A stretch of 41,650 nucleotides of DNA. Source: Basidiobolus meristosporus CBS 931.73 (lineage: Eukaryota > Fungi > Basidiobolomycota). The stretch is from assembly GCA_002104905.1 (NCBI GenBank), contig MCFE01000731.1:1-41650 (forward strand). Reading direction: 5' to 3'. The position numbers and the translations under genes were made by a program. Below are positions 5,010 through 41,110 of this stretch, piece after piece (the first letter of the stretch is position 1; every line of letters begins with the position of its first letter). The notes below the pieces were generated by a model, which was given only the letters and a program-made list of their open reading frames with translations, made no database searches and was not told where the DNA came from.

Positions 5010-5738
5010 ATGCCAGCCAATCTTCCACGCAGAGCACTACTAGCCATCACCAGCTATAACGAGCCTTTCTACGCCAATGGTAGTAAGACTGGACTCTTTT
5101 ATACGGAAGCGTTGCACCCGTTCGAAGCACTTGTCGAGGCCGGGTTCGAGGTTGACTTCGCCTCCGAGACTGGCACTTACGGAGTGGATGAGCACTCCTT
5201 GTCGAAAGACTTTCTCTCCGAGGATGATCAAAAGGTGCTGAACGACCCAGAGCATCCATTCAATGTCAAACTGAACTCACAGCTTCACAAGGCGTCGGAC
5301 CTCAACCCTGCTGATTATGGTCTATTCTTTGCTTCTGCCGGGCACGCGACCTTGTGGGATTACCCTACGGCTCGTGGCCTGCAGCATATTGCCGAGGACA
5401 TATACAAGCGTGGAGGTGTTGTTTCAGCTGTGTGTCATGGGCCAGCCATTCTCCCTGCAATCGTTGACAGCACCACAGGCAAATCCATCATCGCTGGCAA
5501 GAAGGTCACCGGGTTCACCACGGAGGGTGAGGTGATGCTCAGCCTGCTTGATATTATTAAATCAGCCAATGTGGCTACAATCGAAGAAGGAGCGGCCGCT
5601 GTTGGAGCCGAGTATGTGGCACCCCCCACTCCGTTTGCCGATTTTACACAAACTGACGGCCGAGTTGTCACTGGAGCTAACCCAGCAAGCGCACGATCCA
5701 CCGCTGAGGATGCCATCAAGGTGTTCTCGAGCCTCTAA
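5010..5738 (+). CDS. HSP31: DJ-1/PfpI family Hsp31-type glutathione-independent glyoxalase/chaperone, 242 aa, intronless
   Basis: Motifs ALLAITSYNxxFYxxGxKTG, EALHPF, GFEVDFASETG, DEHSL, AGH, VCHG (catalytic Cys-His) and VVTGANPASA follow the yeast Hsp31 pattern. The ORF is intact. Confidence 0.93.
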   Translation: MPANLPRRALLAITSYNEPFYANGSKTGLFYTEALHPFEALVEAGFEVDFASETGTYGVDEHSLSKDFLSEDDQKVLNDPEHPFNVKLNSQLHKASDLNPADYGLFFASAGHATLWDYPTARGLQHIAEDIYKRGGVVSAVCHGPAILPAIVDSTTGKSIIAGKKVTGFTTEGEVMLSLLDIIKSANVATIEEGAAAVGAEYVAPPTPFADFTQTDGRVVTGANPASARSTAEDAIKVFSSL

Positions 5739-10970: not shown

Positions 10971-11184
10971 ATACTCCAGAAAATCATCGTGAGTTCCACA
11001 AAATAATGGAAGAAAATTGAAAAAATAACGAGTGAAGGGAATGCAAAATACCGATGGTACTCAAAAAGTATAATAATTGTGTGAGTAATGACCTGATTAA
11101 TCCATGAAATATATAATAGCAATTTTCCCAGCTAACCCATATTGTATGCTATACAACAGCCTACAAATACGTTATTCGCTCCAC

Positions 11185-11667
11185 ATGCGCTTTATTACTG
11201 TAGGCCTTGCCGCGAATCAAGTTGCCGTTGCTGCCCTAATCGGCTGTTCTTCTACATGCACTCGCGAGTATAGAAGGGTTCATTATCGCAGTTTACCATG
11301 TGTACAGTATGCGACCGATTACCACCAAAACGTTCGAGTTTTGCCTGTTTTTAAGACACCCAATGTCCGATCCCCGTTATTGCGTCAGGTTTTCACCACC
11401 GTGACCAGAAAGCAAGATAGCCTGAACACTGCTAATGCCAACAGCAATAAGGGCTTCAGTGTCAAGTATCAAGCAGGGCCCAGTCTTGAACTGGAGGGTC
11501 GGGGCAACGCATTAGAATATGCCAAGCAAAATGACTGTAGTTCTTTCTCTCCCTACGTTCTGATGCAGCCCAACCAAGATGTACAGTACACAACCCTAGT
11601 AACAGAGATACAATGCGTAAAAGAACAAAATATTCCATACACTCATTGTGCTGACAATTGCACCTAA
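11185..11667 (+). CDS. Family A secreted protein, 160 aa, open frame but shortened signal peptide (possibly decaying)
   Basis: MRFITVGLAANQVAVAALIGCSSTC...PLLRQVFTTVTRKQDSLNTANANSNKGFSVKYQAGPSLE...HCADNCT*; a paralog of 19318, 27870 and 32394. Confidence 0.7.
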   Translation: MRFITVGLAANQVAVAALIGCSSTCTREYRRVHYRSLPCVQYATDYHQNVRVLPVFKTPNVRSPLLRQVFTTVTRKQDSLNTANANSNKGFSVKYQAGPSLELEGRGNALEYAKQNDCSSFSPYVLMQPNQDVQYTTLVTEIQCVKEQNIPYTHCADNCT

Positions 11668-12560: not shown

Positions 12561-14925
12561 GTTAACCAAATATCATTCAAAAATCAAATCAAAATACCAA
12601 TATCTTTCGCTACATATTCATTTTGAAAATCAGCAAGCAAAGAAAAGAAAAATACTTAAAATTTTGTTTGCAAAATGACATACTTGTTTGATTACGATTA
12701 CAGTTTTCTGATCTTTAAAATCAAAATTCATAACTGGATGTTTAAGCGGGCACACAACTTTGCATAAAAATCGGAAAAGAGTAATTCGGTAGTCGAACTT
12801 TATTGTAGCGGCTACTGGTGACCATCCACTCAGACTTGCCAACCTCTGACTGCTCCAGTGCGCTTGGTTTTCGTTGCTCTGTTGCCAGCCTCACGCGTTC
12901 CCCAAGTCTTTAATAACCTTGCCATCTCGCAATTACTTGAAGATGCCAATGTCAACACTAGGCTCCAGAGGACAACGCCCTCGACATGGATCGAAATCAT
13001 CAGCAGGGACCCACTACTCAAGCCTTCACCCAACCAGTTCTCCAGAAGCTTGAGCTACAGATAGACGCCACTCTACCCAACTGCTCACTTAATCGAAAAT
13101 TCAAATTTAGCGAAAGATAGAATGAAGGGGCTAAGAGTTATGGGATTGAGATTATTTATTACAATGCTTTAATATTCATTACCATCGCTTTAGGTTACCT
13201 TTACTGTTCCTTAGTAGACCCATACCACACTCACATACCTCAGGAATGACTGTATGGTGACACTCCTGCGTAATGATTTCGGGCAATAGCTATCTGTGCT
13301 GGGGCATAGGGCCAGTGGGGGGGTACAGAGAGGCATTGTAATCATCAATCTATTTATCTCGCTTCTAGCTCGATCCCCTAGTACCACAGACACTGTTTCA
13401 AAGGTGAAGTCCTTACTCCGGTAAGTCAGGTCCAAAAGCGTACGTGTTCTCTTAAAATATGCCTTGCATTGTTGTATACTACACTCACATCTCAGTAACC
13501 ATGGTCTATGGGTAGACAAATGCGCCAAAGAAAACGCTCAATCCGGAAGAAGAGTGTTTGACACGGTTATTCTGGAGATTGCCGACTTGATTCCTCATAG
13601 CTCATCTTACAATGGGAAGTGCGGAGTTTGGCCGGCATACCAACGCATGCACCGAAGTATTGAGGATGCATGGCTGTTATCGTACTTCTATTTCTCATCC
13701 AAAAAGGCTTCATTGAAATGAATGAACAAACCTGCGGTGTTACATACTCAGTTTTCTTGCCACCAACGCAGTGAATGTAGCCTCGATTCGGGTCTATCAT
13801 CTCAGCCCACCACTATGCCAAGACTTAGCCCGCTCTAGAGACATGAACAACTTGAATGGATTGATGGCCTAACCGAATATTTTGTTATGGCTTGACAAGG
13901 ACAATGAATAGCACTTATTGATTCATTAAATTGCACTTCGCTCATTTCACCAGTACTCTTGGTTCAACTCTAAGTAGGGCAATAGTGGCAATACCAAGTC
14001 TAACAACGCACTTGTATGCACAAGCACATGTCGGGATATGAGGGAAAGAGGATCAGGCAGTTAGTGCCCAGATGGTAAATATCTTAATCTTCAGTGTGTA
14101 TTTCCACGGGTAAAGTCTTATTAATGTAAGCTGTGGATAAACTTCACCACTAGTCACTACTTTAATGAATGAAAAGTAGTAAGCTTCTTATCCACAAAGC
14201 CATTGCATACCACTTAGTCATATCTATATTTACTTGTGCAAAATCAAAGAGTCATCCAACAAACACTTGCGTGTTATTGCAAATAGCGGCATCTAGATTT
14301 AAAATCAAGATTCATCGGTATTTTTGGGGTTCTCTAGCTAGTGTTTATCGCAGACCATGTGCAACAATGTTATATATCATTTATACTTTATAAGCGACAG
14401 TGCTACCTAGGGCGTTGCATATGTTGATTGAATATCATTACCGCTTTAAGTCTCAAACGGTATTCACTCTCATTCCATTGTTACAGACTGCTTAGCCACA
14501 ACAGCCATAGAATGTACATGCTACAGTAAACGTAATTATCAACATTGTCTATGCATCTCGAGGTCCTGATTTACTTTCCCGTTAGAGACCAAAGATGCCT
14601 TATTGGTGTAGAACTACCCCTACACAATAGCATATCTGATGAGCAACCCGGTTTATGGATTTTGATTTTGTGTATTAATACCACATTAACTCTGTACCAC
14701 TATGCCATAATGCTGCAGCTTTGTGTAACTGGTTTACATTACCCAGGTAACCTTCTGAGCTGGTTTACATTACCCGGGTAACTTTATTCTCTTGCACAAC
14801 CATTTGTAGAGCTAGCCACAGCGACTATCGACGAAAGTATGTGCAACAATGTGGAAATGATGCCTATATATTGAGCCAACCCTGCTGCTAGACATCATTC
14901 ACACACTAAGCTCTCAATCAAAACA

Positions 14926-15123
14926 ATGATGAAGAAATTTGCTGTCTCCTTGATGGTCGCCTTCCTTGTGGCCAGCTCCAGTTCCGGCTCCGTAGATGCT
15001 CTCTCGTGCCAAGCCCAAGGGAACTCAAGAGGCTCCTTGTGCGTTTCCGGTAGCTGCCCCACCGGTTGGAGATCCGTGTTCTGGGATACTGGATGCAAGT
15101 CTGGCCAAAGATGCTGTATCTGA
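14926..15123 (+). CDS. Secreted beta-defensin-like 6-Cys peptide, copy 1 (65 aa; ~40 aa mature)
   Basis: Signal peptide MMKKFAVSLMVAFLVASSSSGSVDA plus LSCQAQGNSRGSLCVSGSCPTGWRSVFWDTGCKSGQRCCI; Cys spacing C-x10-C-x4-C-x12-C-x5-CC. TATATA at ~14865. Confidence 0.85.
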   Translation: MMKKFAVSLMVAFLVASSSSGSVDALSCQAQGNSRGSLCVSGSCPTGWRSVFWDTGCKSGQRCCI

Positions 15124-15589
15124 TAGTTAATAAATCCAATATGTTCAATGTTGAATTTACACACAATAACGCAGATGCTAGAAACAGGACAGAGTATTCG
15201 GAGATTGACGCTTGAGAAGCAAGCAGCAACTATATAGCCAAAGTGTAGCAAAATATGTTTGCCTCCTCTTTATGTGAGAGAGTGTTTTGCACAGAGGAAG
15301 GATAAGTAACAGTGTACATGATGTTCTATATTGCTCATGCGTCAAGAGGACTTGCTTACTTTACATATTACAACTTTCCTTACCTGCCATTATGGAGGCC
15401 AGTTGTGTTGACACTCTCTACTTGCGCCCTTCAGGCATAAGTCAAATTTTGATATTCCGGAACACCAAAGATGTTGTATCTACGTAATAAATTATCTAAT
15501 GAACTATCGCCTAAGTCGTCGTAAAGAACACAACATATTTCAACCTTGCTGCTAGACATCATTCACACACTAAGCTCTCCATTAAAACA

Positions 15590-15787
15590 ATGATGATGAA
15601 GTTTGCAGTCTCCCTGATGGTTGCCTTCCTTGTGGCCAGCTCCAGTTCCGGCTCCGTAGATGCTCTCTCGTGCCAAGCCCAAGGGAACTCAAGAGGCTCC
15701 TTGTGCGTTTCCGGTAGCTGCCCCACCGGTTGGAGATCCGTGTTCTGGGATACTGGATGCAAGTCTGGCCAGAGATGCTGTATCTGA
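15590..15787 (+). CDS. Secreted beta-defensin-like 6-Cys peptide, copy 2
   Basis: Tandem duplicate 664 bp downstream of copy 1, with an identical mature peptide. Confidence 0.85.
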   Translation: MMMKFAVSLMVAFLVASSSSGSVDALSCQAQGNSRGSLCVSGSCPTGWRSVFWDTGCKSGQRCCI

Positions 15788-16176
15788 TGATTAATAAATC
15801 TATTACGTTCAATGTTGAATGCTAGAAATAATGCAAGTATACAAAGTAGCTGGATAAAGAAGTAAACAGTGTATGTTGGGGTATTCTAACCATACATGCT
15901 ACACATCATTTACAACAGTATAAATAAAAGTGCTACTCTGCCAAAAACCTCTGGTGGATGCTGGACAATAAGTATAAATCCACTAGTAGATGTATGTGAC
16001 TATTTATTCCCATAAGATCAGGGCCTGGGATCCCATTATAATCACTAATTAGTCTTAGTGCTTCTGTTTGATGCTTTCTATTCTGTTTATAGAATCATCC
16101 ACCTAGACTAGTGCTTCCAACAGTAATACTTGTGTGTGAATTTCATGATAGCATATTACCAAATCTTGTGAAAGGT

Positions 16177-16234
16177 TATTCACCCTATTCACCCTACTCA
16201 CCCTACTCACCCTATTCACCCTATTCACCCTATT
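16177..16234. repeat. 9-bp tandem repeat x6 (TAYTCACCC)
   Basis: tattcaccc x2, tactcaccc x2, tattcaccc x2, tatt; reads (GGGTGARTA)n on the minus strand. Confidence 0.9.
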
Positions 16235-16399
16235 AGGATCACTTAGACTACAGGCAAGCTCCCAAATACATAAACTGCCATTAGACAGTATTTGCGTGAT
16301 ATCAGGGTAAAACAAATCTAGCAAAATACCTATATGGCTGCAGGAGTACTCAAAATAAGAGTTCTAGATAATCTATTTTTCCTGCTTAGAAACACGTTG

Positions 16400-19317: not shown

Positions 19318-19815
19318 ATGCGCTCTACTACCGTAGCAGTGATTCTAAGCCTTGCCGCTCTTCAAGTTGCCGTTGCTGCCCCAATCGGCTGTTCTTCTCC
19401 ATGTACTCGCGAGTATAGAGGGGTTCATTATCGCAGCTTACCATGTGCACAGTATGCGAGCGATTGCTACCAAAACGTTCGAGTTTTGCCTGTCGTTAAG
19501 ACGACGAATGTCCAATCCCCGTTATTGCGCCAGGTTTTCACCACCGTGACCAGAAAGCACGATAACCTGAACATTGCTAACGCCAACAGCAACAAAGGCT
19601 TCAATGTCAAGTATCAAGCAGGGCCCAGTCTCGAACTGGAGGGTGGGGCCAACGCATTAGAATACGCCAAGCAAAAGGGAGCGGAACACTCGGAAGATAG
19701 TTCTTTCTCTCCCTACGTTCTGATGCAGCCCACTCAAGATGTACAATACACGGCCCCTGTCGCAGAAATGCAATGCGTAGAAGATTGCCCAGAGCAAAAT
19801 GTTCAATACAATTAG
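19318..19815 (+). CDS. Family A secreted protein, 165 aa (C-terminus truncated by TAG just before the last Cys pair)
   Basis: MRSTTVAVILSLAALQVAVA signal; family A core PLLRQVFTTVTRKHDNLN.ANANSNKGFNVKYQAGPSLE. Confidence 0.85.
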   Translation: MRSTTVAVILSLAALQVAVAAPIGCSSPCTREYRGVHYRSLPCAQYASDCYQNVRVLPVVKTTNVQSPLLRQVFTTVTRKHDNLNIANANSNKGFNVKYQAGPSLELEGGANALEYAKQKGAEHSEDSSFSPYVLMQPTQDVQYTAPVAEMQCVEDCPEQNVQYN

Positions 19816-26968: not shown

Positions 26969-27869
26969 TATTACGAATAAATATCCCATTTGAAGTCATT
27001 GAAACATCAGCAGCCTTAGTGTGAAAACTGCTATACCACAGGTATTAACAATGGTTGCTACTAGCCTTGTTCAAAACCGCAACTTTAATTGAGTTTTTGC
27101 ATATAAATTCTTGATAAGCACTATTTTTTAACTTTTTGAATTTCCAGTAAGAACGCTTCTTTTGCCCCTAATATCGCTCAAAGTCACAGTCTGCCCATCT
27201 ACAGAGCCAGTAGATAAACTCAGGGAAGTGTTGGAGAGTGTCATTGAGGAAGCAAAACGCGATATGACTCATACTACGAGTTGTCAAGCGAGCGCTCGAA
27301 GCGTGCACACAGGAATGGCACTGTTCTTACGTAGATCATTATCTCATTGTCAGTTTGCAGAAATATCTTTCATCATAAATAATACCTTCGATTTTTTATC
27401 CCCAAAATTGTGGGTCTAATTATGAAAATTTTCCTCACTTCTTCTGTGGTAAATATAGCGCTACACCCTCTAGGCAACGGTAAGACTGTATATAGTACAT
27501 TCCCAGTTGCTAGTTGAGTTATAGTGAGCAGTGACTGATCGGTCCTTCGGGATTAAAGGTTGTATTCGGTTGATGAACTTGCCGGTGATTATTTCAACAG
27601 CCTGGCGAGGACGGCCCGCTCATTCTGAGAGGTTGCTAATTGATACACAGGCTAAAATAAACCATTTGATGGAAAGTATGCTTAATACAAGCAAATGAAC
27701 GAAACCTCAACAAACTCCATATAGATATAGATATATAAGCACTACCTAGCAGTTTGTTTGTAATCTATTAGTAGTGTATGGGAACCATGGGTATCCAAAC
27801 CATACTATATAACTTGCTGTGCTATATATTCATCAGTGCACTTCCGTGTGAACGGAACTATTCGACAAG

Positions 27870-28406
27870 ATGCGTTTTGCTACAGCAGCAGTGATTTTGG
27901 CCCTCGCTTCTCTTCAACTGGCGGTTGCTGCCCCAATCGGTTGCTCTTCCCCTTGTACCAGTGAGTATAAAAGGGCTCATTATCGTAGCTCACCATGTGC
28001 ACAGTATGCGGAAGGCTGCTATCAGAATGTCCAAGTGTTGCCAACCATCAAGACAACAAATATCCAAGCCCCATTGTTACGTCAGGTGTTCACTACTGTT
28101 ACCAGAAAACACGACAATCTGAACACTGCAAATGCCAGCAGTGATAAACGCTTCAACGTGGAGTACCAAGCAGGCCCCAGTCTCGAAGCAGAGGGCTCAG
28201 CTAGCGCATTAGAATACGCCAAGCAGAAGGAAGCTGAGCACTCGGATGACAGTTATTCGAATCCCTATGTCTTTATGCAGCCCACCCATGATGTGCAATA
28301 CTCAGAACCCATGGTTGAGACCCAATGCGTCTCAGACTGTCCTGAGCAAAATGAACAATATACAGAGCCTACGGAGAATACCGAGTGTGCTGATAATTGC
28401 GCTTGA
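27870..28406 (+). CDS. Family A secreted protein, 178 aa
   Basis: MRFATAAVILALASLQLAVA signal; CSSPC, PCAQYAEGCYQ, family A core and two C-terminal C-x3-C repeats. Confidence 0.88.
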   Translation: MRFATAAVILALASLQLAVAAPIGCSSPCTSEYKRAHYRSSPCAQYAEGCYQNVQVLPTIKTTNIQAPLLRQVFTTVTRKHDNLNTANASSDKRFNVEYQAGPSLEAEGSASALEYAKQKEAEHSDDSYSNPYVFMQPTHDVQYSEPMVETQCVSDCPEQNEQYTEPTENTECADNCA

Positions 28407-28764
28407 AGTAGCCTAATAAAGCTTACCTACTCTTTCTTTCAACCATGAAGAAATAGGAAATTTACTAGAAACAGTATGAATAGTATGATGCCAAGGGAGC
28501 AATACACCAATTAATGGGCACATATACCCGGGCTTAAATCTAACCCTCCCATAAATATTCACTTCATATGATGGCTGATAAGCAGGGAGGCATAATCCGT
28601 CTGTAATGATGGTGATGGAGTAGAACATATATACGTATATACCTCTTTTCTGACTAAAAGCCTGCGGAAGGGATGAATATTTACACAATGCATATCTCTC
28701 CATGTACTCTGGTTTCCCTATTTTATTATTAACAGCGTAGGAATCTCAGTGCTCCATGTTTACA

Positions 28765-29116
28765 TTAATATCTGTAGCGGCGTCGTTCACAACGACTACA
28801 CGATGGTTGATCATAATCATCACTTTGGTATTTGTCTTCGTCCTCATCTGGGATCGGTGATTGCACATATGTGGGCGTAGATGGTTGGAATAACGTCTGA
28901 TCCACCAACTGCACCTGGCCATATTGATTTGAGTTGGAGAGAGCTTGGGCATCCTGCGCAGAGTTAGCCTGGATGCTGTCCAGCAACGGAGAGGCATCTG
29001 GGACATCCGATGGGTAGTCTGTCGATGAATATGATTCAAGGTATGGTGTCTGGTTGTTGTATGTATCGATGGGCCAAGAATACTATGGTGGATAGAATGT
29101 AGGTATTGTAATGCAT
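28765..29116 (-). pseudogene. Family C pseudogene (same 20-nt and 9-nt deletions as the 25610-25979 copy)
   Basis: The 3' part is near-identical to the intact 33277 copy (PDEDEDKYQSDDYDQPSCSRCERRRYRY); the 5' part is frameshifted. Confidence 0.85.
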
Positions 29117-29883
29117 TTTGGTGCTTAGTGATACTCGACAATTACTTTTATCCACACTTTTATACATGATATACATGATAGGCATGATTCATCAATGATC
29201 ATCAGCTACCCAAGCACAGCTTACTAAATTATTTAGCCAAAGTTAATCATCATTCTATTCAGAACAACTAAATGATGAGTTGATTATCATCTCACATTCA
29301 TATCACAATCAATAGTGAAATCAATGGTGTTAATCAGTGACCAAGTTAGCCTACCATTGGGCTGCATGACGAAAAATATGTAAATATTAATTGACCAATC
29401 GGCATTCAACATTGGCATTCAATATCAGGTTTGTACTAGCAAATATCGAACCTCAAGTCTTCAACTAGGCGAGACCACTCGTGATAACTACGATTGTTTA
29501 TTTATCGTATTTACGAACCAAGTATTGTTCTTACAAAGATTATATGATATCTAGCTTTGTTAATATTACGGAATAAAATCTATGGATATATGAGCCTTGC
29601 TTTCCTGAGTTAGGTAATTATCAATTGATAGCGAGAATGCTACTTGTTGTTGCTTGGCTGGTTTTATGCGTTCCTACTATCCAAGTGACTCCTGGTTACG
29701 TTGAGATCATTTGAGCGGATATCAATAGCGTTCTTATTACCTATCCTTCATCTATCACAGCTATCTATTAAAATGTGAATACATCAACGTAGTTATGCTC
29801 ATCAATATCCAAGCCTTGATATATAGTCAAACGCACTATATATGAAAGATTGTATGAGGCAAAATACTCATTCGTCCTTCAAG

Positions 29884-30438
29884 ATGCGTGCAACTACTAT
29901 TATGATGATTTTGGCCCTTGTGTCTCTTCAGACCACCATCGCAGCCCCAGTCCCATGCTCTTCATGTTCCCGCAAGTATAGAAGAGTCCGTCAACGTAGC
30001 TCACGATGCTCTGACCAAGAAAGCAACTGCCACTCGAGTAACCAAGTTCAACCGATTGTTGAAGTGCCAAATGTCCAAGCCCCATTATTGCGACAGGTGT
30101 TCACTACCGTTACAAGGAAAAATGACAATCTCAACACTGCTAATGCGAATAGTGACAAGAGCCTTAATGTGAACTATCAGGCTGGCCCCAGCCTTGAGGC
30201 AGAAGGTGAAGCAATTGCCACTGAGTTTGCTAAACAGAAGGGGGACTCTTCCTCTGCAGATGATTCATCATATCCCGTGGTTGTGGTTCAGCCCTCGCAA
30301 GACGTTCAGTATGCAACACCAGTAGTGGATACTCAATGTATTGAAGGTTGCTCAGGCCAGGATGTACAGTACATGGAACCCCTGGCAGATGCATCATGTG
30401 GTGACAATTGTGCTGATCAGTTAACTGAGCCTATGTAA
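29884..30438 (+). CDS. Family A secreted protein (divergent subtype A'), 184 aa
   Basis: MRATTIMMILALVSLQTTIA signal; PCSSCSRKYRRVRQR; PLLRQVFTTVTRKNDNLNTANANSDKSLNVNYQAGPSLEAEG. TATATA at ~29836. Confidence 0.87.
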   Translation: MRATTIMMILALVSLQTTIAAPVPCSSCSRKYRRVRQRSSRCSDQESNCHSSNQVQPIVEVPNVQAPLLRQVFTTVTRKNDNLNTANANSDKSLNVNYQAGPSLEAEGEAIATEFAKQKGDSSSADDSSYPVVVVQPSQDVQYATPVVDTQCIEGCSGQDVQYMEPLADASCGDNCADQLTEPM

Positions 30439-31419: not shown

Positions 31420-32393
31420 TATTACGAATAAATATCCCATTTGAAGTCACTGAAACATCAGCAGCCTTAGTGTGTGAACTGCTATACTACAGGTATTAAC
31501 AATGGTTGCTACTAGTCGTATTCTATAATATACATGAATCGCAACTATATTTTACCCTTTATGAATTTCCACGCTCCTTTTCTCTCTTGCAAACTTGTAT
31601 ATGAGGCAATTCCTATGCTCTGATGTAAATATCACTCACAGTAACAGTCTGCCAATCTACAGAGCCAGTAGATAAACTCAGGGAAGTGTTGGAGAGTGTC
31701 ATTGAGGAAGTAAAAAGCGATATGACTCATACTACGAGTTGTCAAGCGAGCGCTCGAAGCGTGCACACAGGAATGGCACCGTTCTTACGTAGATCATTAT
31801 TTCATTGTCAAGTTGAAGGGATATCTTTCATTATAAATAATACCTTCAATTTTTTATCCCCAAAATTGTGGGTCTAATTGTGAAAATTTTCCTCATTTCT
31901 TCGGTTATACACATAGCGCTACACCCTCTAGGGAGCGATAAGACTGTATATAGTACATTCCCAGTTACTAGTTGAGTCCTAGTGAGAAGTGACTGATCGG
32001 TCCTTCGGGACTAAAGGTTTTATGCAGTTGATGATTGATTATTTCAGCAACCTGGAGAGGACGGCCTGTTCACTCTGACAGCTTGTTTATTAATATTCAA
32101 ACTAAACTAATCCATTTGATGGAGAGTATGCTCAATGCAAACAAATGAATGTCTAAACTACTGGAGACTGATAAAACTACTATAGCCTATACAAGTGAGT
32201 ATGTTATTTCACTTGCTGGATAACTCAACCTCAATAAACTCCATATAGATATAGCTATATAAGCACTACCTAGCAGTCTGTTTGTAATCTATTAGTAGTG
32301 TATGGGAACCATGGGTATCCAAACTATACTATATAACTTGTTGCGCTATATATTCATCAGTGTACTTCCGTGTGAACGGAATTATTCAACAAG

Positions 32394-32930
32394 ATGCGTT
32401 TTACTACAGCAGCAGTGATTTTGGCCCTCGCTTCTCTTCAACTGGCAGGTGCTGCTCCAATCGGTTGCTCCTCTCCTTGTACCAGCGAGTATAAAAGGGT
32501 TCATTATCGTAGCTCACCATGTGCACAGTATGCGGAAGGCTGCTATCAGAATGTCCAAGTTTTACCCACCATCAAGACAACAAATATCCAAGCCCCATTG
32601 TTACGTCAGGTGTTCACTACAGTTACCAGAAAACACGACAATCTGAACACTGCAAATGCCAACAGTGATAAAGGCTTCAACGCGAAGTACCAAGCAGGCC
32701 CCAGTCTCGAAGCAGAGGGCTCAGCTAGCGCATTAGAATACGCCAAGCAGAAGGAAGCCGAGCACTCGGATGACAGTTATTCGAATCCCTATGTCTTTAT
32801 GCAGCCCACCCATGATGTGCAATACTCAGAGCCCATGGTTGAGACCCAATGCGTCTCAGACTGTCCTGAGCAAAATGAGCAATATACAGAGCCTATGGAG
32901 AATACCGAGTGTGCTGATAATTGCGCTTGA
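32394..32930 (+). CDS. Family A secreted protein, 178 aa (recent duplicate of 27870)
   Basis: Near-identical to 27870-28406; intact ORF with a signal peptide. Confidence 0.88.
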   Translation: MRFTTAAVILALASLQLAGAAPIGCSSPCTSEYKRVHYRSSPCAQYAEGCYQNVQVLPTIKTTNIQAPLLRQVFTTVTRKHDNLNTANANSDKGFNAKYQAGPSLEAEGSASALEYAKQKEAEHSDDSYSNPYVFMQPTHDVQYSEPMVETQCVSDCPEQNEQYTEPMENTECADNCA

Positions 32931-33276
32931 AGTAGCCTAATAAAGCTTACATACTCTTTCTTTCAACCATGAAGAAATAGGAAATTTACTAGAAACAATA
33001 TGAATAGTATGATGCCAAGGGAGCAATACACCAATTAATGGGCATATATACCCGGGCTTAAATCTCACCCTCCCATAAATATTCACCTCATATGATGGCA
33101 TAATCCGTCTTTAATTATGGCGATGGAGTAGAACATAGATATATACATTTATGCCTCTTTTCTCACTAAAAGCCTGCGGAAGGGATGAATATTTACACAA
33201 TGCATATCTCTCCATGTACTCTGGTTTCCCTATTTTATTGTTAACAGCGTAGGAATCTCAGTGCTCCATGTTTACA

Positions 33277-33657
33277 TTAATATCTGTAGCGGCGTCGTTC
33301 ACAACGACTACACGATGGTTGATCATAATCATCACTTTCGTATTTGTCTTCGTCCTCATCTGGGATCGGTGATTGCACATATGTAGGCGTAGATGGTTGG
33401 AATAACGTCTGATCCACCAACTGCACCTGGTCATATTGATTTGAGTTGGAGAGAGCTTGGGCATCTTGCGCAGAGTTAGCCTGGATGCTGTCCAGCAACG
33501 GTGAGGCATCTGGGACATCCGATGGGTAGTCTGTCGATGAATATGATTCAGTTGAATCAAGGTATGGCGTCTGGCTGTTGTATGCATCGATGGGAGATGC
33601 ATAGGATGCACCGGCCAAGAATACTATGGTGGATAGAATGTAGGTATTGTAATGCAT
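33277..33657 (-). CDS. Family C secreted protein, 126 aa (only intact C copy)
   Basis: MHYNTYILSTIVFLAGASYA signal; PLLDSIQANSAQDAQALSNSNQYDQVQLVDQTLFQP; acidic tract; C-terminal CSRCERRRYRY. The ORF track starts 20 codons upstream. Confidence 0.85.
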   Translation of the reverse strand: MHYNTYILSTIVFLAGASYASPIDAYNSQTPYLDSTESYSSTDYPSDVPDASPLLDSIQANSAQDAQALSNSNQYDQVQLVDQTLFQPSTPTYVQSPIPDEDEDKYESDDYDQPSCSRCERRRYRY

Positions 33658-36630: not shown

Positions 36631-36694
36631 GACACACCAAAGTTTGTAAATAAACTGCCTTGATTCATCTATAAGCAACCAGAAGTGGCCATGG

Positions 36695-37042
36695 TGTTGT
36701 AAAAGTTTGTAACTCCACCTAAATATTCTCCTAACTTAGTCACTTATATCATTACCATCAAATCCTAGAGAATACTGGCCAAATTCCTTGTTGGGATTTA
36801 CTTGGAATATTTTCACAAAAATACCAGGTACCCAGATCATGAAAATTCTCAAAGTTGTCCAAACAGCCCCAAACTTTGCACACATGTTCTTAGGACCTTT
36901 TTAACCTATTCTATGTGACTGTTATGCCAAGATCATGTAGAAGTATAAATATTACATTTACATTCAATAAATCATTGAGTGAAAACCACATAATCTACTT
37001 GTTCTCCCAATCACTTCCAATATCTCCAAGACTCTTACAACA
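36695..37042 (+). repeat. Copia 5' LTR (348 bp)
   Basis: TG...CA termini, with TATAAA and AATAAA inside; roughly 90% identical to the 3' LTR by eye. Confidence 0.95.
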
Positions 37043-37046
37043 GGCT

Positions 37047-40000
37047 ATGAGCCCCAAGCTGTCACTCTCTGCAATGTCTACTACTATCATTACTGGAATT
37101 TTTCCCTCTGCTGAAAAGTTGGATGGCTCTAACTACCAAGTGTGGAAGGTGAAGATGAAGATGCTGCTACAAGAAAGAGGTCTTTGAGATATTACCATGG
37201 GAGAAGAATGCCCTCCTGAAAATGTGGGGGAGGAAGCCTCAAAGTATCAGAAGAAAGAATAAAGTGCCTTTAACTGCATTTGCCTTAATGTCAAGGACAA
37301 ATTGCTAATTCTATGCTCAAGAGCAAAAAGGGCAAAGAATGCCTGGAAAGCATTAGAAGACACATACCAGTCATGTTCAGCTGCCAAGAAAATGTATCTG
37401 AGACAAATATTCTTTACTACCAAGATGCAGCCAGAAGAAGAAATGAAAAATCTCATTAACAGAGTTACCCTGCTGGTGGATGAGATGGAATCTGTAGGTG
37501 TACCAACTACTAATGAGGATGTGATAGTAACCATCCTGAATAGCCTGACAGATAAGTTTCAGGATCTTGTATCAGCCCTAGAGTCCAGAACTGAAGATTT
37601 AACCTTGAATTACATATATGGAAGGCTCCTCAATGAAGAATTAAGAAAATCAAGCACCAATAAGAAAGAAGAAGAAAATACTTTAATAAGCAATGATAAC
37701 CAACAAAGGTGGTACCCAAGACCCTACAAAGGCAACAGCAACCCTAACACTTGATGCAGTGGGAGAAGAAAATACCCAATTAAGCCTTAGAAGCAGTGGA
37801 GGAAGCCATACACTGACCTTTAAAGAAGTACTCTATGTACCAGAAATAGCCAAGAACCTACTATCTGTAAGCAAGGCCACAGCCAAAGGGCCCAGTTTCA
37901 GTTTGACAATTCTGGATGCAGGATCACTGACCAAAATGGTACCCATATTGCTTTGGGTATCAGAGAACAGAATCTATGCAAGTTAATTTATATTCCATCA
38001 TATCTGGAAGCCAATATAAGTAACTTAAATGAAGAAACACCAATGCCTTGGCACAAGAGATTTGGACACATCAATTTTGATTATTTGCGCAATATGATCA
38101 AAGATCAGCTAATTTCTGGAGTAAAAATTGATCCTCCAGCTAATTTGGAGCACTGTGAGGCCTGCATATATGGGAAACAAGCCAGACAACTGTTCAAGAG
38201 CTCTGCGTTAATCAAAATTAAGAAAAATTAGATCTAATCCATGCAGATCTGTGTGGACCTATGCAAAATTTATCCTTATGTGGGATGAAGTATTTAAGCA
38301 CTTTTATTGATGATTATACATGATACACATAGGTCTGCTTCATGGAAAGAAAGGAAGAAGCTCTGTCTAAGTTCAGGGAGCTTAAAGCCATGGTAGAGAG
38401 AGAAACTGGTGAAAAAATCAAGAAAATACACTCTGACAATGGTGGAGAATATACCACAAAACTCTTCATCCACTTCTGCAAAATTTATGGGATAAAGCAA
38501 GAGACTACTGTACCATACTCCCCACCGCAAAATGGAGTAGCAGAATGTGCTAACAGATCAATAATGGATATGGCAAGATCTACAATCCATGATCAAATAT
38601 TATTCTATGGTTTTTGGGTGGAATCAGTTGCCACTGCTGTATACCTTAAGAATAGGAGTTATAACAGAATATTTTGTGATTCTACTCCATTTGAAGCATG
38701 GTATAGATACAGACCAAGTGAAGAACATCTAAGAATATTTGGGTGTACAGCATATGCCCAAAAACTTCCAGGAAATCTGTCAAAATTTGAGCCAAAAAGT
38801 GTAAAATGCATATTTTTAGGCTACTGCAATGAGAGTAAGGCATACACACTCTACAATATCAAAGCAAAGAAGCTGATCAAGTCCAGAGATGTGTTGTTTG
38901 ATGAAAATTCAAAATTTTCACAAAAAATGACATCTGATGATGACAAAATTTGATCTCAAGTCCATCAATAGTCAGGATTGAATCAGCGCAAAAGAATGAA
39001 TATTTTTCCCTTCCAGAGGACTCTACAAACCGTGGTTCTGCCAGAATCAGTGCCCAGCAATATCCCAGAAGTGATCATTCCAGTATCAAATGCCAGGGGA
39101 TCCAATCAGACAAGAAATAGCCCAAATTACTATATCAATGAGGGTACCAGCTTAGCCTTTGCCTATTCAGTCCATATTGAGGAACCCCAGACTGTAAAAG
39201 AGGCCGTGAATAGCCCTCAGACAAAGCTTTGGAGAGCTGCAATGACTGAGGAATATCAGGCCCTGATGGAAAATCATACTTGGGACTCATTCAAATAACC
39301 AATCAGCCTAAAATCAATTGGATGCGGATGAGCCTTTAAGACAAAATACAAGGCTGATGGCTCAATTGAAAGATACAAAGCAAGAATTGTGGCCAAAGAA
39401 TATTCTCAAACAAAAAGAATTGACTATACTGAGACCTTTGCACCGGTAGCAAAGTTTAATTTCATCAGAATGATATTGGCTATTGCAGCCAAAAACAAGC
39501 TTTTATACATCAAATGGATGTAAAAGCTGCATTTTTGAATGAAGTACTTGATGAAAATGTGTATATGGACCAGCCTGATGGGTTTGTTGACTAAGATAAC
39601 CCCCATTTGGTCTGCAAGCTTAAAAAATCTCTATATGGTCTCAAACAATCACTGAGAGCCTGTATTGAAAGATAGATTCTTATTTGGAATCTTTGAGTTT
39701 CAAAAGGAGTAATGCTGACTATAGTATATACTACAAGTCAGATAGAGTAAATCCAGCTCTATTGGCTCTATATGTGGATGATCTTATTATAGCTGCCAAT
39801 AACCTAGCAACATTAGAAGAGACTAAATCCAGCCTATCTGAAGAGTTCAAGATGTCCAATCTAGGAGAGCTCAGTTACTACTTAGGGATAAAGTTCTCCA
39901 TAGACAGAAGTACCCAGACTATTACCCTAAGCCAATCCAAGTATATTCAAGATATACTCAAGAAGTACCAAATGGAAGACTGTAAACCAGCAGCTACCCC

Positions 40001-40727
40001 AATGGAGACAAACCTTAACTTGGTCAAAGCTCAACCAAATCAAGAAAGCTTGGTGCCATCTGAAAGCCCTGACTTTTGTTATCAATCTATGATTGGCAGT
40101 CTGATGTATATTATGCTTGGAACATGTCCACATATCTCTTATTCAGTGGGAGTTGTCAGCCAGCATAATCAGAACTATGGATCTGATCATGTTGCAGCAG
40201 TTTAGCGGATTTCTAAATACCTAAAAGGAATTGCTGATATCTGCTTCAGATACACTTATAAGGGTTCAGAACAGGATCTTTTGGGATACTCTGATGCTGA
40301 TTGGGGACAAGAATTATAAGACAGAAGACCCACCACAGGATACACTGTTCTTTACTGTCAAGGTGCAATTTCATGGAATTCAAGAAAACAACCAACCACA
40401 GAACTTTTTACCACAGAGGCAGAGTATATGGCAGCCTGTGAAGCTACAAAAGAAGCAATGTGACTAAGAAAGCTTTTTACAGATTTAGGCCTATGTCGAA
40501 GAATGCCTATTATTTTATTTCAAGATAATCAAGGATGTATACAATTAGGTAGAAATCCAATTTTTCATGCTAGAACTAAGCACATAGATATTAGACATCA
40601 TTTTATACATGAAGCTATAGAGAATATCTTAGTTAGCTTGGCTTACTGTCCTTCAGATGAAATGATTGCAGATATATTCACCAAACCATTAGCTAGAGAC
40701 AAGTTTGAATATCTTAGATCAAGTTAG
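37047..40727 (+). pseudogene. Copia gag-pol pseudogene
   Basis: KLDGSNYQVWKVKMKMLL (gag); WHKRFGH...CEACIYGKQ (integrase Zn finger); HSDNGGEY...TVPYSPPQNGVAE (integrase core); LYVDDLII (RT); GYSDADWG and RTKHIDIRHHFI (RNase H). Many stops; the gag zinc knuckle and protease active site are not seen and appear deleted near 37740. Confidence 0.93.
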
Positions 40728-40761
40728 GACTAGTCAGTATGAACATTTAGCTGAGTGGGAG

Positions 40762-41110
40762 TGTTGTAAAGATTTGTGATTCCACCTAAACATTCACCTA
40801 ACTTAGTCACTTAGATCATTACCATCAAATCCTGGAGAATACTGACCAAAATCCTTGTTGGGGTTTACTTAGAATATATTCACCAAAATATCAGGTACCC
40901 AGAACATAAAAATTCTCAAAGTTGTCCAAACAGCCCCAAACTTTGCACACATGTTCTTGAGACCTTCCTTAGCCTATTCTACGTGTTTGTTATGCCAACA
41001 CCATGTAAGAGTATAAATACCACTTTTCCATTCAATAAATCATTGAGTGAAAGCCACATAATCTACTTGTTCTCCCAATCACTTCCAATATCTCCAAGAC
41101 TCTTACAACA
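40762..41110 (+). repeat. Copia 3' LTR (349 bp)
   Basis: Follows the PPT, ends CAACA and is followed by the TSD CATGG. Confidence 0.95.

Follow-up and report, generated by a model that had tools for sequence, protein, structure and literature searches.

Defensins are divided into a cis group, described from plants, fungi and invertebrates, and a trans group, described from animals only (PMC5234102, PMC8877149). Those described in fungi are of the cis (CS-alpha/beta) type only (PMC8877149, PMC5234102), in agreement with what an earlier note on the DNA studied here had stated for the characterised ones. PMC5234102 cites the definition of Shafee et al., by which trans-defensins have their two most conserved disulfides exiting the final strand in opposite directions. 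We found no fungal beta- or trans-defensin in the searchable literature, and within that literature the beta-defensin fold class is so far reported only from animals. One paper considered as a report of a fungal beta-defensin (PMC6461984) was discarded as a mere text match to "Cs-alpha-beta-defensin".

Here we analyzed two genes of the fungus Basidiobolus meristosporus CBS 931.73 that encode a small cysteine-rich peptide. They lie in a stretch of 41,650 nucleotides, the whole of which we refer to as the window, and correspond to two plus strand open reading frames (ORF) of 65 amino acids each (14926-15123 and 15590-15787). Both ORFs lie in a direct repeat family (D9; 280 nt, 14877-15156 and 15541-15820, 95% identity). 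At the DNA level the two genes share 97% identity; their prepeptides differ by a single residue (K3M), and their mature peptides are identical. The features of the locus are as follows:

14865..14872, plus strand: TATA-like box of gene 1, ATATATTGAG, read directly, about 55 nt 5' of the ATG
14877..15156, plus strand: repeat unit copy 1 (D9), with 5' leader, coding sequence and poly(A) signal, 95% identical to 15541-15820
14926..15123, plus strand: gene 1, intronless, 65-aa prepeptide (signal peptide 14926-15000, mature 40-mer 15001-15120)
15129..15134, plus strand: AATAAA signal of gene 1, 6 nt past the stop, read directly
15464..15500, plus strand: decayed 3'-end fragment of an older copy, a short and weak match with the gene 1 end in a local alignment
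15541..15820, plus strand: repeat unit copy 2, whose similarity to other copies begins just 49 nt 5' of the ATG
15590..15787, plus strand: gene 2, intronless, 65-aa prepeptide (signal peptide 15590-15664, mature 15665-15784)
15793..15798, plus strand: AATAAA signal of gene 2, read directly

Gene 1 ends with TGA followed by TAG, and gene 2 with two consecutive TGA codons. The decayed fragment contains codons resembling Q-R-C-C-I and an AATAAA, without a stop, and is located within a spacer common to other loci. The N-terminal 25 residues of the prepeptide look like a standard signal peptide: MMKK is followed by a 12-residue hydrophobic core and by SSSSGSVDA, which places V at -3 and A at -1. 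The mature 40-residue part begins two residues ahead of the first cysteine and has Cys at positions 3, 14, 19, 32, 38 and 39 (C-x10-C-x4-C-x12-C-x5-CC). The elements from which the earlier note started (a 40-mer with six Cys, a terminal CC, C-x4-C-P-x-G and G-C-x5-CC) are all read in this part, and its computed net charge of +3 (pI 8.7) agrees with the value of about +3 given there.

The same gene was found in arrays of two to three copies at at least four further loci of the B. meristosporus genome. The peptide together with about 3.5 kb of flank matches contigs of strain CBS 931.73 at 94-97%, confirming the suggestion that the DNA is from a fungal genome and not from an animal contig. Across loci, the ORF with its CC-I end and double stop is intact in 11 of 13 copies; this conservation, and relatives detected down to E=2e-16 (see below), indicate a peptide beyond chance. 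In the mature part of the 11 intact paralogues, the varying codon positions comprise five synonymous and four non-synonymous ones. The TATA-like ATATATTGAG is present in 12 of the 13 copies and absent upstream of copy 2 in the window. An AATAAA follows the stop in 12 of the 13 aligned copies, with AACAAG instead at L003:4266. Compared with the three-copy arrays at L001 and L004, the window misses about 1.9 kb, which hold the middle copy plus the third copy's promoter region. The peptide gene has a GC3 of 0.65 versus 0.43-0.57 in neighbouring genes, a difference that is uninformative on foreign origin.

The beta-defensin six-Cys framework is C-x(4-8)-C-x(3-5)-C-x(9-13)-C-x(4-7)-CC. Four of the five spacings of the fungal peptide are within its ranges, and the first loop is longer. 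Like vertebrate beta-defensins (hBD1, hBD2, AvBD3, AvBD11 and the crocodile CpoBD13), the peptide has six Cys ending in CC and the spacing Cys2-x4-Cys3; it also shares with them a signal peptide, a length within 36-45 residues, a cationic charge (+3 in the Basidiobolus peptide) and, as in several of them, a Pro directly after Cys3. In contrast, the first loop has 4-8 residues in the vertebrate proteins and mostly 9-12 in the fungal family, and where they have G-x-C the fungal peptide has Gly immediately before Cys4. The fungal family further differs in its long invariant aromatic loop, its anionic members, its fungal host and its intronless gene. Neither the C-x3-C nor the C-x-C motif of CS-alpha/beta defensins occurs in the window peptide; the adjacent Cys pair is Cys5-Cys6 at the C-terminus, as opposed to the usual Cys3-Cys4 of knottins, which are paired 1-4, 2-5, 3-6; and the N-terminal hydrophobic domain of big defensins is absent from the mature peptide.

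Sequence homology to vertebrate beta-defensins was undetectable in our Pfam and PDB searches. In Pfam hmmscan, run to E<=10 with the window peptide and to E<=1 with 28 aligned members of its family, no defensin family came up, and Defensin_beta, Defensin_beta_2 and Defensin_big (PF00711, PF13841, PF14862) were all without a match. Nothing significant was obtained from Pfam with the peptide, the deposited models or the 28 members, phmmer and hmmsearch against PDB sequences returned no defensin and no relevant chain, and an ESM Atlas search with the mature part yielded no usable match. The language-model features of one member (P0016) were nearest to a chordate "beta-defensin-like" cluster (score 0.78), which we treat as a lead only.

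Searching 1.84 billion representative proteins with HMMER, we obtained 30 matches at E<=1e-3, 28 of them genuine (best E=2e-16). The other two, P0012 (Ranatra, 1298 aa) and P0015 (656 aa), were dropped as artefacts in which short repeats were summed over many copies. A final profile search added 16 new proteins, and about 45 relatives carry the motif CP-x-G-[WYF]-R-S-V-F-[WY]-D-x-G-C...CC-[IV]. The fungal relatives cover more than 25 named species in four phyla, with members in Mortierellomycota, Agaricales, Eurotiales, Hypocreales and Dothideomycetes. In animals the family was found in hexapods only, namely sciarid fungus gnats and one springtail. The hexapod relatives were taken as database proteins, with exons read by reference; the signal-peptide exon of Orchesella was inferred from DNA. 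The closest relative of the Basidiobolus peptide is P0005, which is found in the Logan runs SRR34115466, SRR34115526 and SRR34115462. None of the relatives carries an annotation or belongs to a Pfam family.

In the alignment of 28 sequences (A1), Cys2, 3, 5 and 6 are present in every row and Cys1 in at least 90%; rows of the Mortierellomycota type have Cys4 displaced by 2-3 residues, and one Cys is missing from each of P0031 and P0027. The CC pair is invariant in alignments A1-A3, and the central loop has near-invariant P, G, V, D and G. The first loop has mostly 9-12 residues (shortest 6), the last loop 4 to 17, and the family domain of P0034 measures 44 aa. Roughly half of the 40 positions show strong conservation. 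The domain's net charge differs between members (-3 to +6), with the loop unchanged. Several relatives are thus anionic, which is unusual among defensin-type antimicrobials. In ascomycete members the pro-region ends in K-R directly ahead of the domain, an arrangement known from other secreted fungal peptides. The peptide is a member of an undescribed family, widespread but patchy in fungi.

The peptide is predicted to fold like animal beta-defensins. The AlphaFold model built with the family alignment (m70962c8f110e) has a pLDDT of 86.8, and a single-sequence model (pLDDT 78.1) has the same strands. Both consist of a three-stranded antiparallel sheet with a short N-terminal helix; DSSP places the helix of the alignment-based model at 3-6 and the strands at 13-15, around 25-31, and 37-39. 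The earlier note had proposed such modelling followed by a fold search, and the matches were almost exclusively to the beta-defensin (trans-defensin) fold. When the alignment-based model was compared with 48,161 chains using VIA-align, 22 of the 23 chains at Z>=2 were of this fold: beta-, alpha- and big defensins, sea-anemone defensin-like toxins, crotamine, the tick carboxypeptidase inhibitor and helianthamide. For the single-sequence model, all 18 chains at Z>=2 belonged to the beta-defensin class. The best VIA-align chains were AvBD11 (Z 3.3, rmsd 2.2 over 34 of 40 residues) and hBD2 (Z 2.9), and the superposition on vertebrate beta-defensins extends over 33-34 of 40 residues at rmsd 2.0-2.5. 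The top Foldseek rows were also of the beta-defensin class (hBD1, TM 0.55-0.63 over 33 columns), the first match being a sea-anemone channel-active peptide. On an absolute scale these are low scores (the best Z being 3.3 and the best Foldseek E 0.4, none at E<=1e-3), because a 40-mer sets a ceiling on them, and a chance topology still has room. Identity to the beta-defensin structures is 18-30% over 33-34 aligned residues, an indirect hint in that such values would be expected were the six Cys equivalent to those of beta-defensins, which are paired 1-5, 2-4, 3-6. The CS-alpha/beta, knottin, hevein and CBM1 folds were not among the matches of either model (Z>=2, 48,161 chains), so that two folds named beforehand as possible refutations, knottin and hevein, did not appear. 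With regard to the strand geometry of trans-defensins, the invariant CC lies within the predicted last strand (37-39). The interpretation of the earlier note is supported: "beta-defensin-like" holds on the predicted fold, and sequence methods give no link to the beta-defensin family proper.

Other described families compare as follows. The C-terminal domain of big defensins (oyster Cg-BigDef1) matched the model at Z 2.6 (rmsd 2.1-2.6 over 32-35 residues) and shares with the fungal peptide the CC end and a long Cys3-Cys4 loop; the fungal peptide, however, lacks the N-terminal hydrophobic domain and has no sequence similarity to big defensins. Plectasin, micasin, eurocin and copsin are likewise small secreted fungal peptides with at least three disulfides, a signal peptide, a K-R-ended pro-region in some cases, and a presumed role against competing bacteria. 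Unlike the peptide with its terminal CC, they have C-x3-C...C-x-C on a helix and a strand (cis), and they were absent from the fold matches.

Our overall reading, to which we give roughly even odds, is that of a secreted defensin-fold peptide of an undescribed fungal family, with a role in defence or competition, which hexapods acquired from fungi. Each gene is a compact intronless unit with a TATA box, a short leader, 65 codons and an AATAAA signal, and the gene is amplified as tandem arrays at several near-identical B. meristosporus loci. The signal peptide would be removed after V-D-A, presumably leading to secretion, and the freed 40-residue peptide would be stabilised by three disulfides of putative pairing. 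It would form a short N-terminal turn or helix and an antiparallel three-stranded sheet with the CC on the last strand, from which the two bridges of this pair would face opposite sides. Outside the cell, the peptide would serve in defence or competition against other microbes, and a secreted peptide against competing microbes is the most likely function. We propose a specific target because the charge varies from -3 to +6 while the loop is fixed; general cationic membrane damage is unlikely as the mechanism. The target could be one conserved microbial structure, such as a cell-envelope lipid or glycan, bound via the invariant aromatic-cationic loop (G-[WYF]-R-S-V-F-[WY]-D) together with the conserved [KR] that precedes CC.

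It is a minor but real possibility that the models are wrong, and that this is a genuine secreted cysteine-rich family with another connectivity, e.g. an unrelated disulfide-rich hairpin or a clip-domain-like structure. All fold scores are weak and the structure-model alignment is shallow (28 sequences), and the cysteine pattern by itself may have led AlphaFold to a memorised defensin shape. Against this, two independent runs, with and without the alignment, agree on strands and match class, and adjacent Cys on a terminal strand must face opposite ways, which is the trans-defensin geometry. Clip domains have a six-Cys pattern ending in CC with defensin-type pairing. Arthropod clip domains further resemble the family in their occurrence in hexapods, and two members match the clip-domain model CLIP_SPH_mas faintly (E=0.27). 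The fungal peptide is, however, free of a protease, its Pfam matches to clip domains are not significant, and no clip-domain structure was found at Z>=2; on these grounds the clip-domain reading was rejected.

We consider it unlikely that the peptide has the same fold but an animal target, acting as an anti-feedant toxin, ion-channel modulator or enzyme inhibitor against fungivores or in the host gut. The presence of sea-anemone toxins, crotamine, helianthamide and the tick carboxypeptidase inhibitor among the structural matches, with a channel-active peptide first in Foldseek, is consistent with such a role, as is the habitat of Basidiobolus, in animal guts and on insects; conservation of about half of the 40 residues while charge varies would fit a single protein target. 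Yet members are known from saprotrophs, thermophiles and mushrooms, whose contacts with animals differ greatly, searches of PDB sequences with sequences and profiles revealed no similarity to those toxins and inhibitors, and the retention of the gene by fungus-feeding hexapods is more easily explained by a microbial target.

A small carbohydrate-binding module (CBM1), gripping cellulose or chitin by an aromatic strip, is very unlikely. Five deposited Basidiobolus models (P0001-P0004, P0037) are labelled "CBM1 domain-containing protein" in UniRef. In the peptide, the first three Cys are spaced much as in CBM1 (C-x10-C-x4-C) and the conserved loop contains three aromatics; fungal CBM1 domains are also disulfide-stabilised and have about 36-40 residues. 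They have four conserved Cys and no terminal CC, though, as opposed to six ending in CC, and the homologues of other species carry no CBM1 name. Neither the window peptide (E<=10) nor the 28 members (E<=1) matched Pfam CBM_1 (PF00734), and both searches of the 48,161 chains were free of CBM1 structures at Z>=2. With no profile match, no fold match and a six-Cys framework, this reading was rejected. Finally, animal DNA, whether contamination or recent capture of a vertebrate beta-defensin from an amphibian or reptile host, is suggested by nothing other than the cysteine pattern and the gut habitat, and is extremely improbable given that the locus sits in fungal sequence at at least five loci of a deposited fungal assembly, that over 25 named species from four fungal phyla have relatives, and that no vertebrate protein was among the matches over 1.84 billion representatives.

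Returning to the secreted peptide of a fungal family, the question raised by the earlier note, convergence versus horizontal transfer, takes a different form: since the family is mainly fungal, it becomes one of transfer from fungi to hexapods. Such a transfer is likely, and would run to fungus-feeding hexapods, not from a vertebrate to the fungus. Its direction is drawn from parsimony of distribution, as the 42-column tree is mostly unresolved; trees on these columns neither supported nor rejected a single hexapod clade (p-AU 0.34). The sciarid flies and the springtail are a candidate case of fungus-to-animal effector peptide transfer, in a group in which transferred genes have already been reported (PMC11665903). 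A more far-reaching reading, which we regard as doubtful, is that the family shares true ancient descent with the trans-defensins and is their first branch outside animals; the beta- and big-defensin fold would then be older than the split of fungi and animals, or would have crossed kingdoms. On that reading, the copies in fungus gnats and springtails would represent a ready-made immune or competition effector passed from fungi to hexapods that feed on them, with insect-associated fungi such as the Basidiobolus lineage as possible donors. A conserved fungal family with a trans-type fold would blur the cis/trans division, and would provide a test case of convergence versus shared ancestry in tiny disulfide-rich peptides. 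The family also offers a new, compact and highly conserved scaffold of 40 residues, with about half of the positions fixed over four fungal phyla, whose putative target may be a conserved microbial structure.

We also observed that the last Cys is spliced out in the deposited Basidiobolus gene models. Their C-terminus looks like an annotation error and needs correction.

Two tandem ORFs in the window, each encoding a 65-aa prepeptide, read as a compact eukaryotic gene layout, with the following elements.

Elements of the gene pair in the window
14926-15123, + strand, copy 1 ORF, 65 codons
15590-15787, + strand, copy 2 ORF, 65 codons
14877-15156 and 15541-15820, direct repeat of 280 nt enclosing the ORFs, 95% identity
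14865-14872, TATA-like box of copy 1
15001-15120, mature peptide of copy 1, 40 residues, followed by two stop codons
about 15464-15500, short decayed 3' fragment of an older copy, in the spacer between the copies

The two copies are 97% identical in DNA and differ in a single residue, near the start. The leader of copy 1 is kept between copies; its ATG opens a standard signal peptide with a predicted cleavage site after V-D-A, and an AATAAA lies 6 bases past the stop. The mature peptide has the Cys spacing C-x10-C-x4-C-x12-C-x5-CC and a net charge of +3, and the elements described in the earlier note (C-x4-C-P-x-G, G-C-x5-CC and the charge) were recovered in every detail. In copy 2, similarity to other copies starts just 49 nt upstream of the ATG and the TATA box is missing, because the window lacks about 1.9 kb relative to three-copy arrays, made up of the middle copy plus the third copy's promoter region. 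Judged from sequence, the gene pair is real and expressed-looking, and is predicted to encode a secreted six-Cys peptide. Directly downstream of the pair, at 16180-16235, is a microsatellite of about 8 heptamer units (CACCCTA type).

An animal-derived contig, the outcome that the earlier note had named as fatal to a fungal defensin-like peptide, was not what we found. A word-index protein search matched solely proteins of Basidiobolus meristosporus CBS 931.73 (97% identity), and the window aligned to the four contigs carrying them (L001-L004; GCA_002104905.1 contigs MCFE01000283, 991, 651 and 763) with 94-97% identity across some 3.5 kb of flanking sequence, which identifies the contig as fungal. 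The same segment occurs in at least five near-identical loci of the genome, which carry arrays of two or three copies spaced about 1.27 kb apart. Eleven of the 13 copies seen are intact, and two are frameshifted, one by a 2-nt deletion in the signal-peptide part (L004:4275) and the other by two 1-nt deletions (L001:3961).

The deposited Basidiobolus protein models end differently. In P0001-P0003 and P0037 an intron splits the terminal Cys-Cys pair, deleting the last Cys, and a tail that varies between copies is added; P0037 extends into a decayed gene fragment, and P0004 is a fusion of two adjacent genes. Every intact copy has CC-I and a double stop, whereas the putative second exon is broken by indels in some and missing from others. 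In other species, too, the CC-[IV] end is kept in all but two of roughly 50 aligned relatives, mostly as the terminus and in a few with a short tail after it, the exceptions being P0001 and a partial Benniella model (P0042). This comparison indicates that the deposited 3' ends are wrong and that the true product is the predicted 65-aa peptide of the unspliced ORF.

A HMMER search of 1.84 billion representative proteins (E<=1e-3) gave 30 matches, of which P0012 and P0015 were ruled out as short-repeat artefacts. The remaining matches have in common six essentially invariant Cys, within the motif [SG]-C-Q-x-Q-G ... C-x2-G-x-C-P-x-G-[WYF]-R-S-V-F-[WY]-D-x-G-C ... [QW]-[RK]-C-C-[IV], and two profile searches of a 5.8-billion-protein collection added further members, with names. 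The named sources from all these searches are as follows.

Taxa with named family members
Zoopagomycota: Basidiobolus
Mortierellomycota: Benniella (at least 6 adjacent genes), Mortierella, Entomortierella
Agaricales: Pleurotus eryngii, P. djamor, Leucoagaricus, Coprinopsis, Agaricus bisporus
Eurotiales: Thermomyces, Aspergillus, four Penicillium species
Hypocreales: Beauveria, Torrubiella, Aphanocladium, Fusarium
Dothideomycetes: Pseudocercospora
Hexapods: the sciarid flies Bradysia odoriphaga and Pseudolycoriella hygida; the springtail Orchesella dallaii

All named members carry the database names "hypothetical" or "uncharacterized", and a Pfam scan of family members matched no family. On sequence evidence, then, the Basidiobolus peptide is not an orphan but a member of an undescribed family of fungi and hexapods. 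Some relatives have other architectures: P0008 (Logan, 136 aa) contains the domain three times in tandem, P0035 (ENA, 330 aa) has it C-terminally after three G-L-K-A-D-x-G-K-Y...R-C repeats, and in P0031 (202 aa) it lies downstream of a hydrophobic, membrane-anchor-like stretch.

The mature peptide was modelled with AlphaFold, alone (pLDDT 78) and with a 28-sequence alignment (pLDDT 86.8). The two models share strands at roughly 13-15 and 37-39, with a short N-terminal helix as an extra feature of the alignment-based one. Foldseek against PDB returned nothing at E<=1e-3; its best row was a sea-anemone defensin-like peptide (E 0.42), and its top rows included human beta-defensin 1 (TM 0.55-0.63 over 33 columns, 27-30% identity), hBD2, avian beta-defensins and alpha-defensins. 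In a search with VIA-align, a method independent of Foldseek, against 48,161 representative chains, 22 of the 23 chains with Z>=2 for the alignment-based model, and all 18 for the single-sequence model, had a beta-defensin-type fold, which is in line with the fold proposed in the earlier note. The matches included AvBD11 (Z 3.3, rmsd 2.2, 34 residues), AvBD3, a crocodile defensin, hBD1, 2, 3, 4 and 6, oyster big defensin, alpha-defensins, crotamine, sea-anemone peptides, tick carboxypeptidase inhibitor and helianthamide, with absolute scores that are low, as is unavoidable at 40 residues. Neither VIA-align list contained a structure of the CBM1, knottin, hevein, CS-alpha/beta or clip-domain type. 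Since the lists are near-exclusively of beta-defensin type, the models have that fold, and the remaining uncertainty is the correctness of the models. The invariant CC pair lies on the last predicted strand, so that its two bridges would leave in opposite directions, the arrangement that defines trans-defensins (as cited in PMC5234102). The ESM Atlas offers no more than a lead: the cluster nearest to family member P0016 is a chordate "beta-defensin-like" one (score 0.78).

In UniRef the Basidiobolus models go under the name "CBM1 domain-containing protein", presumably assigned through an automatic profile match, and the spacing of the first three Cys is CBM1-like. We reject this membership: Pfam CBM_1 gives no match, the conserved Cys of the family are six, the models have no CBM1 structural match, and the name is not given to homologues elsewhere. 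Glycan binding via the aromatic loop is possible. Pfam scans and PDB sequence and profile searches gave no sequence link between the family and animal defensins, and canonical beta-defensins have a shorter first loop. Convergence is fully possible as the source of the likeness; we call the peptide beta-defensin-like for its predicted fold and its framework, without filing it as a beta-defensin family member. Reviews and primary papers place fungal defensins in the cis superfamily (PMC8877149, PMC5234102), and the literature searched, with incomplete coverage of subscription journals, contained neither this family nor any fungal peptide of beta- or trans-defensin type. Our reading is of a predicted beta-defensin-type fold in an undescribed fungal and hexapod peptide family.

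Contamination does not account for the hexapod copies, which are resident animal genes. In the sciarids they are carried by a 193-Mb chromosome and a 2.8-Mb scaffold whose GC is insect-like (34-36%), and each gene has a phase-1 intron of about 60 nt within the Asp codon just upstream of the cleavage site; at the matching junction, the Orchesella locus seems to carry a phase-1 intron too. The Basidiobolus genes are intronless, as is the Pleurotus gene, which is flanked by ordinary fungal housekeeping genes. The closest relative of the Basidiobolus peptide, P0005, from sequencing runs (domain identity 78%), has the sciarid-type intron and DNA resembling Bradysia, not Basidiobolus, and so is probably from a hexapod. 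On Pseudolycoriella chromosome CM055403.1, an inverted second signal-peptide exon (L005:9239-9481) is present some 500 nt upstream of the fly gene, so duplicated copies occur at the fly locus too; two of the fly gene models, P0014 and P0036, are adjacent.

Resolution was low in the trees, which were built on 42 columns. They supported one clade of ascomycetes and one of Mortierellomycota, and all hexapod sequences fell in an unresolved group with Basidiobolus and Agaricales, where a single hexapod clade was not rejected (p-AU 0.34). The fungal part of the family tree disagrees with the species tree: one tight, well-supported clade (P0020, P0041, P0058) unites Mortierella sp. with Aspergillus sclerotialis and Agaricus bisporus, and the Aspergillus lentulus and Aphanocladium album domains are identical (P0048, P0051). 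Such a pattern points to ancient paralogy followed by many losses, or else to gene transfer from one fungus to another. Given four fungal phyla with deep subtypes on one side and only a few fungus-feeding hexapods on the other, the simpler reading, though not proven, is that the family passed from fungi to hexapods; horizontally acquired genes have already been reported in sciarids (PMC11665903).

Domain net charge ranges from -3 to +6 across the family and about half of the positions are fixed, including the aromatic-cationic loop and the basic residue preceding CC, which argues for one specific conserved target and not general cationic membrane damage. The signal peptide, the pro-regions ending in K-R immediately upstream of the domain in ascomycetes, the tandem amplification, the setting among duplicated secreted-protein genes and the retention by animals of microbe-rich decaying matter fit extracellular use against competitors. 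Most likely, we infer, the peptide would act as an antimicrobial by binding an envelope lipid or glycan; the main alternative is a toxin or inhibitor acting on animals.

The window also holds a cluster of duplicated small secreted-protein genes (11104-11667, 19318-19815, 27870-28406, 32394-32930 and 29842-30438), whose products have a signal peptide followed by A-P-I-G-C-S-S-P-C, and within it a segmental duplication of about 4.5 kb (repeats 27170-29137 and 31628-33649). This places the defensin-like genes in a compartment where secreted-protein genes and repeats abound. A Ty1/copia-type retroelement occupies 36694-40966, with flanking direct repeats of 206 nt (36694-36899 and 40761-40966, 91% identical) and its ORF in separate pieces (gag 37302-37754, integrase 38342-38953, RVT_2 39684-40205). 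The sole clear housekeeping-type gene near the locus is an intact ORF of the DJ-1/PfpI family (5010-5738, 242 aa, Pfam E=2.5e-8).
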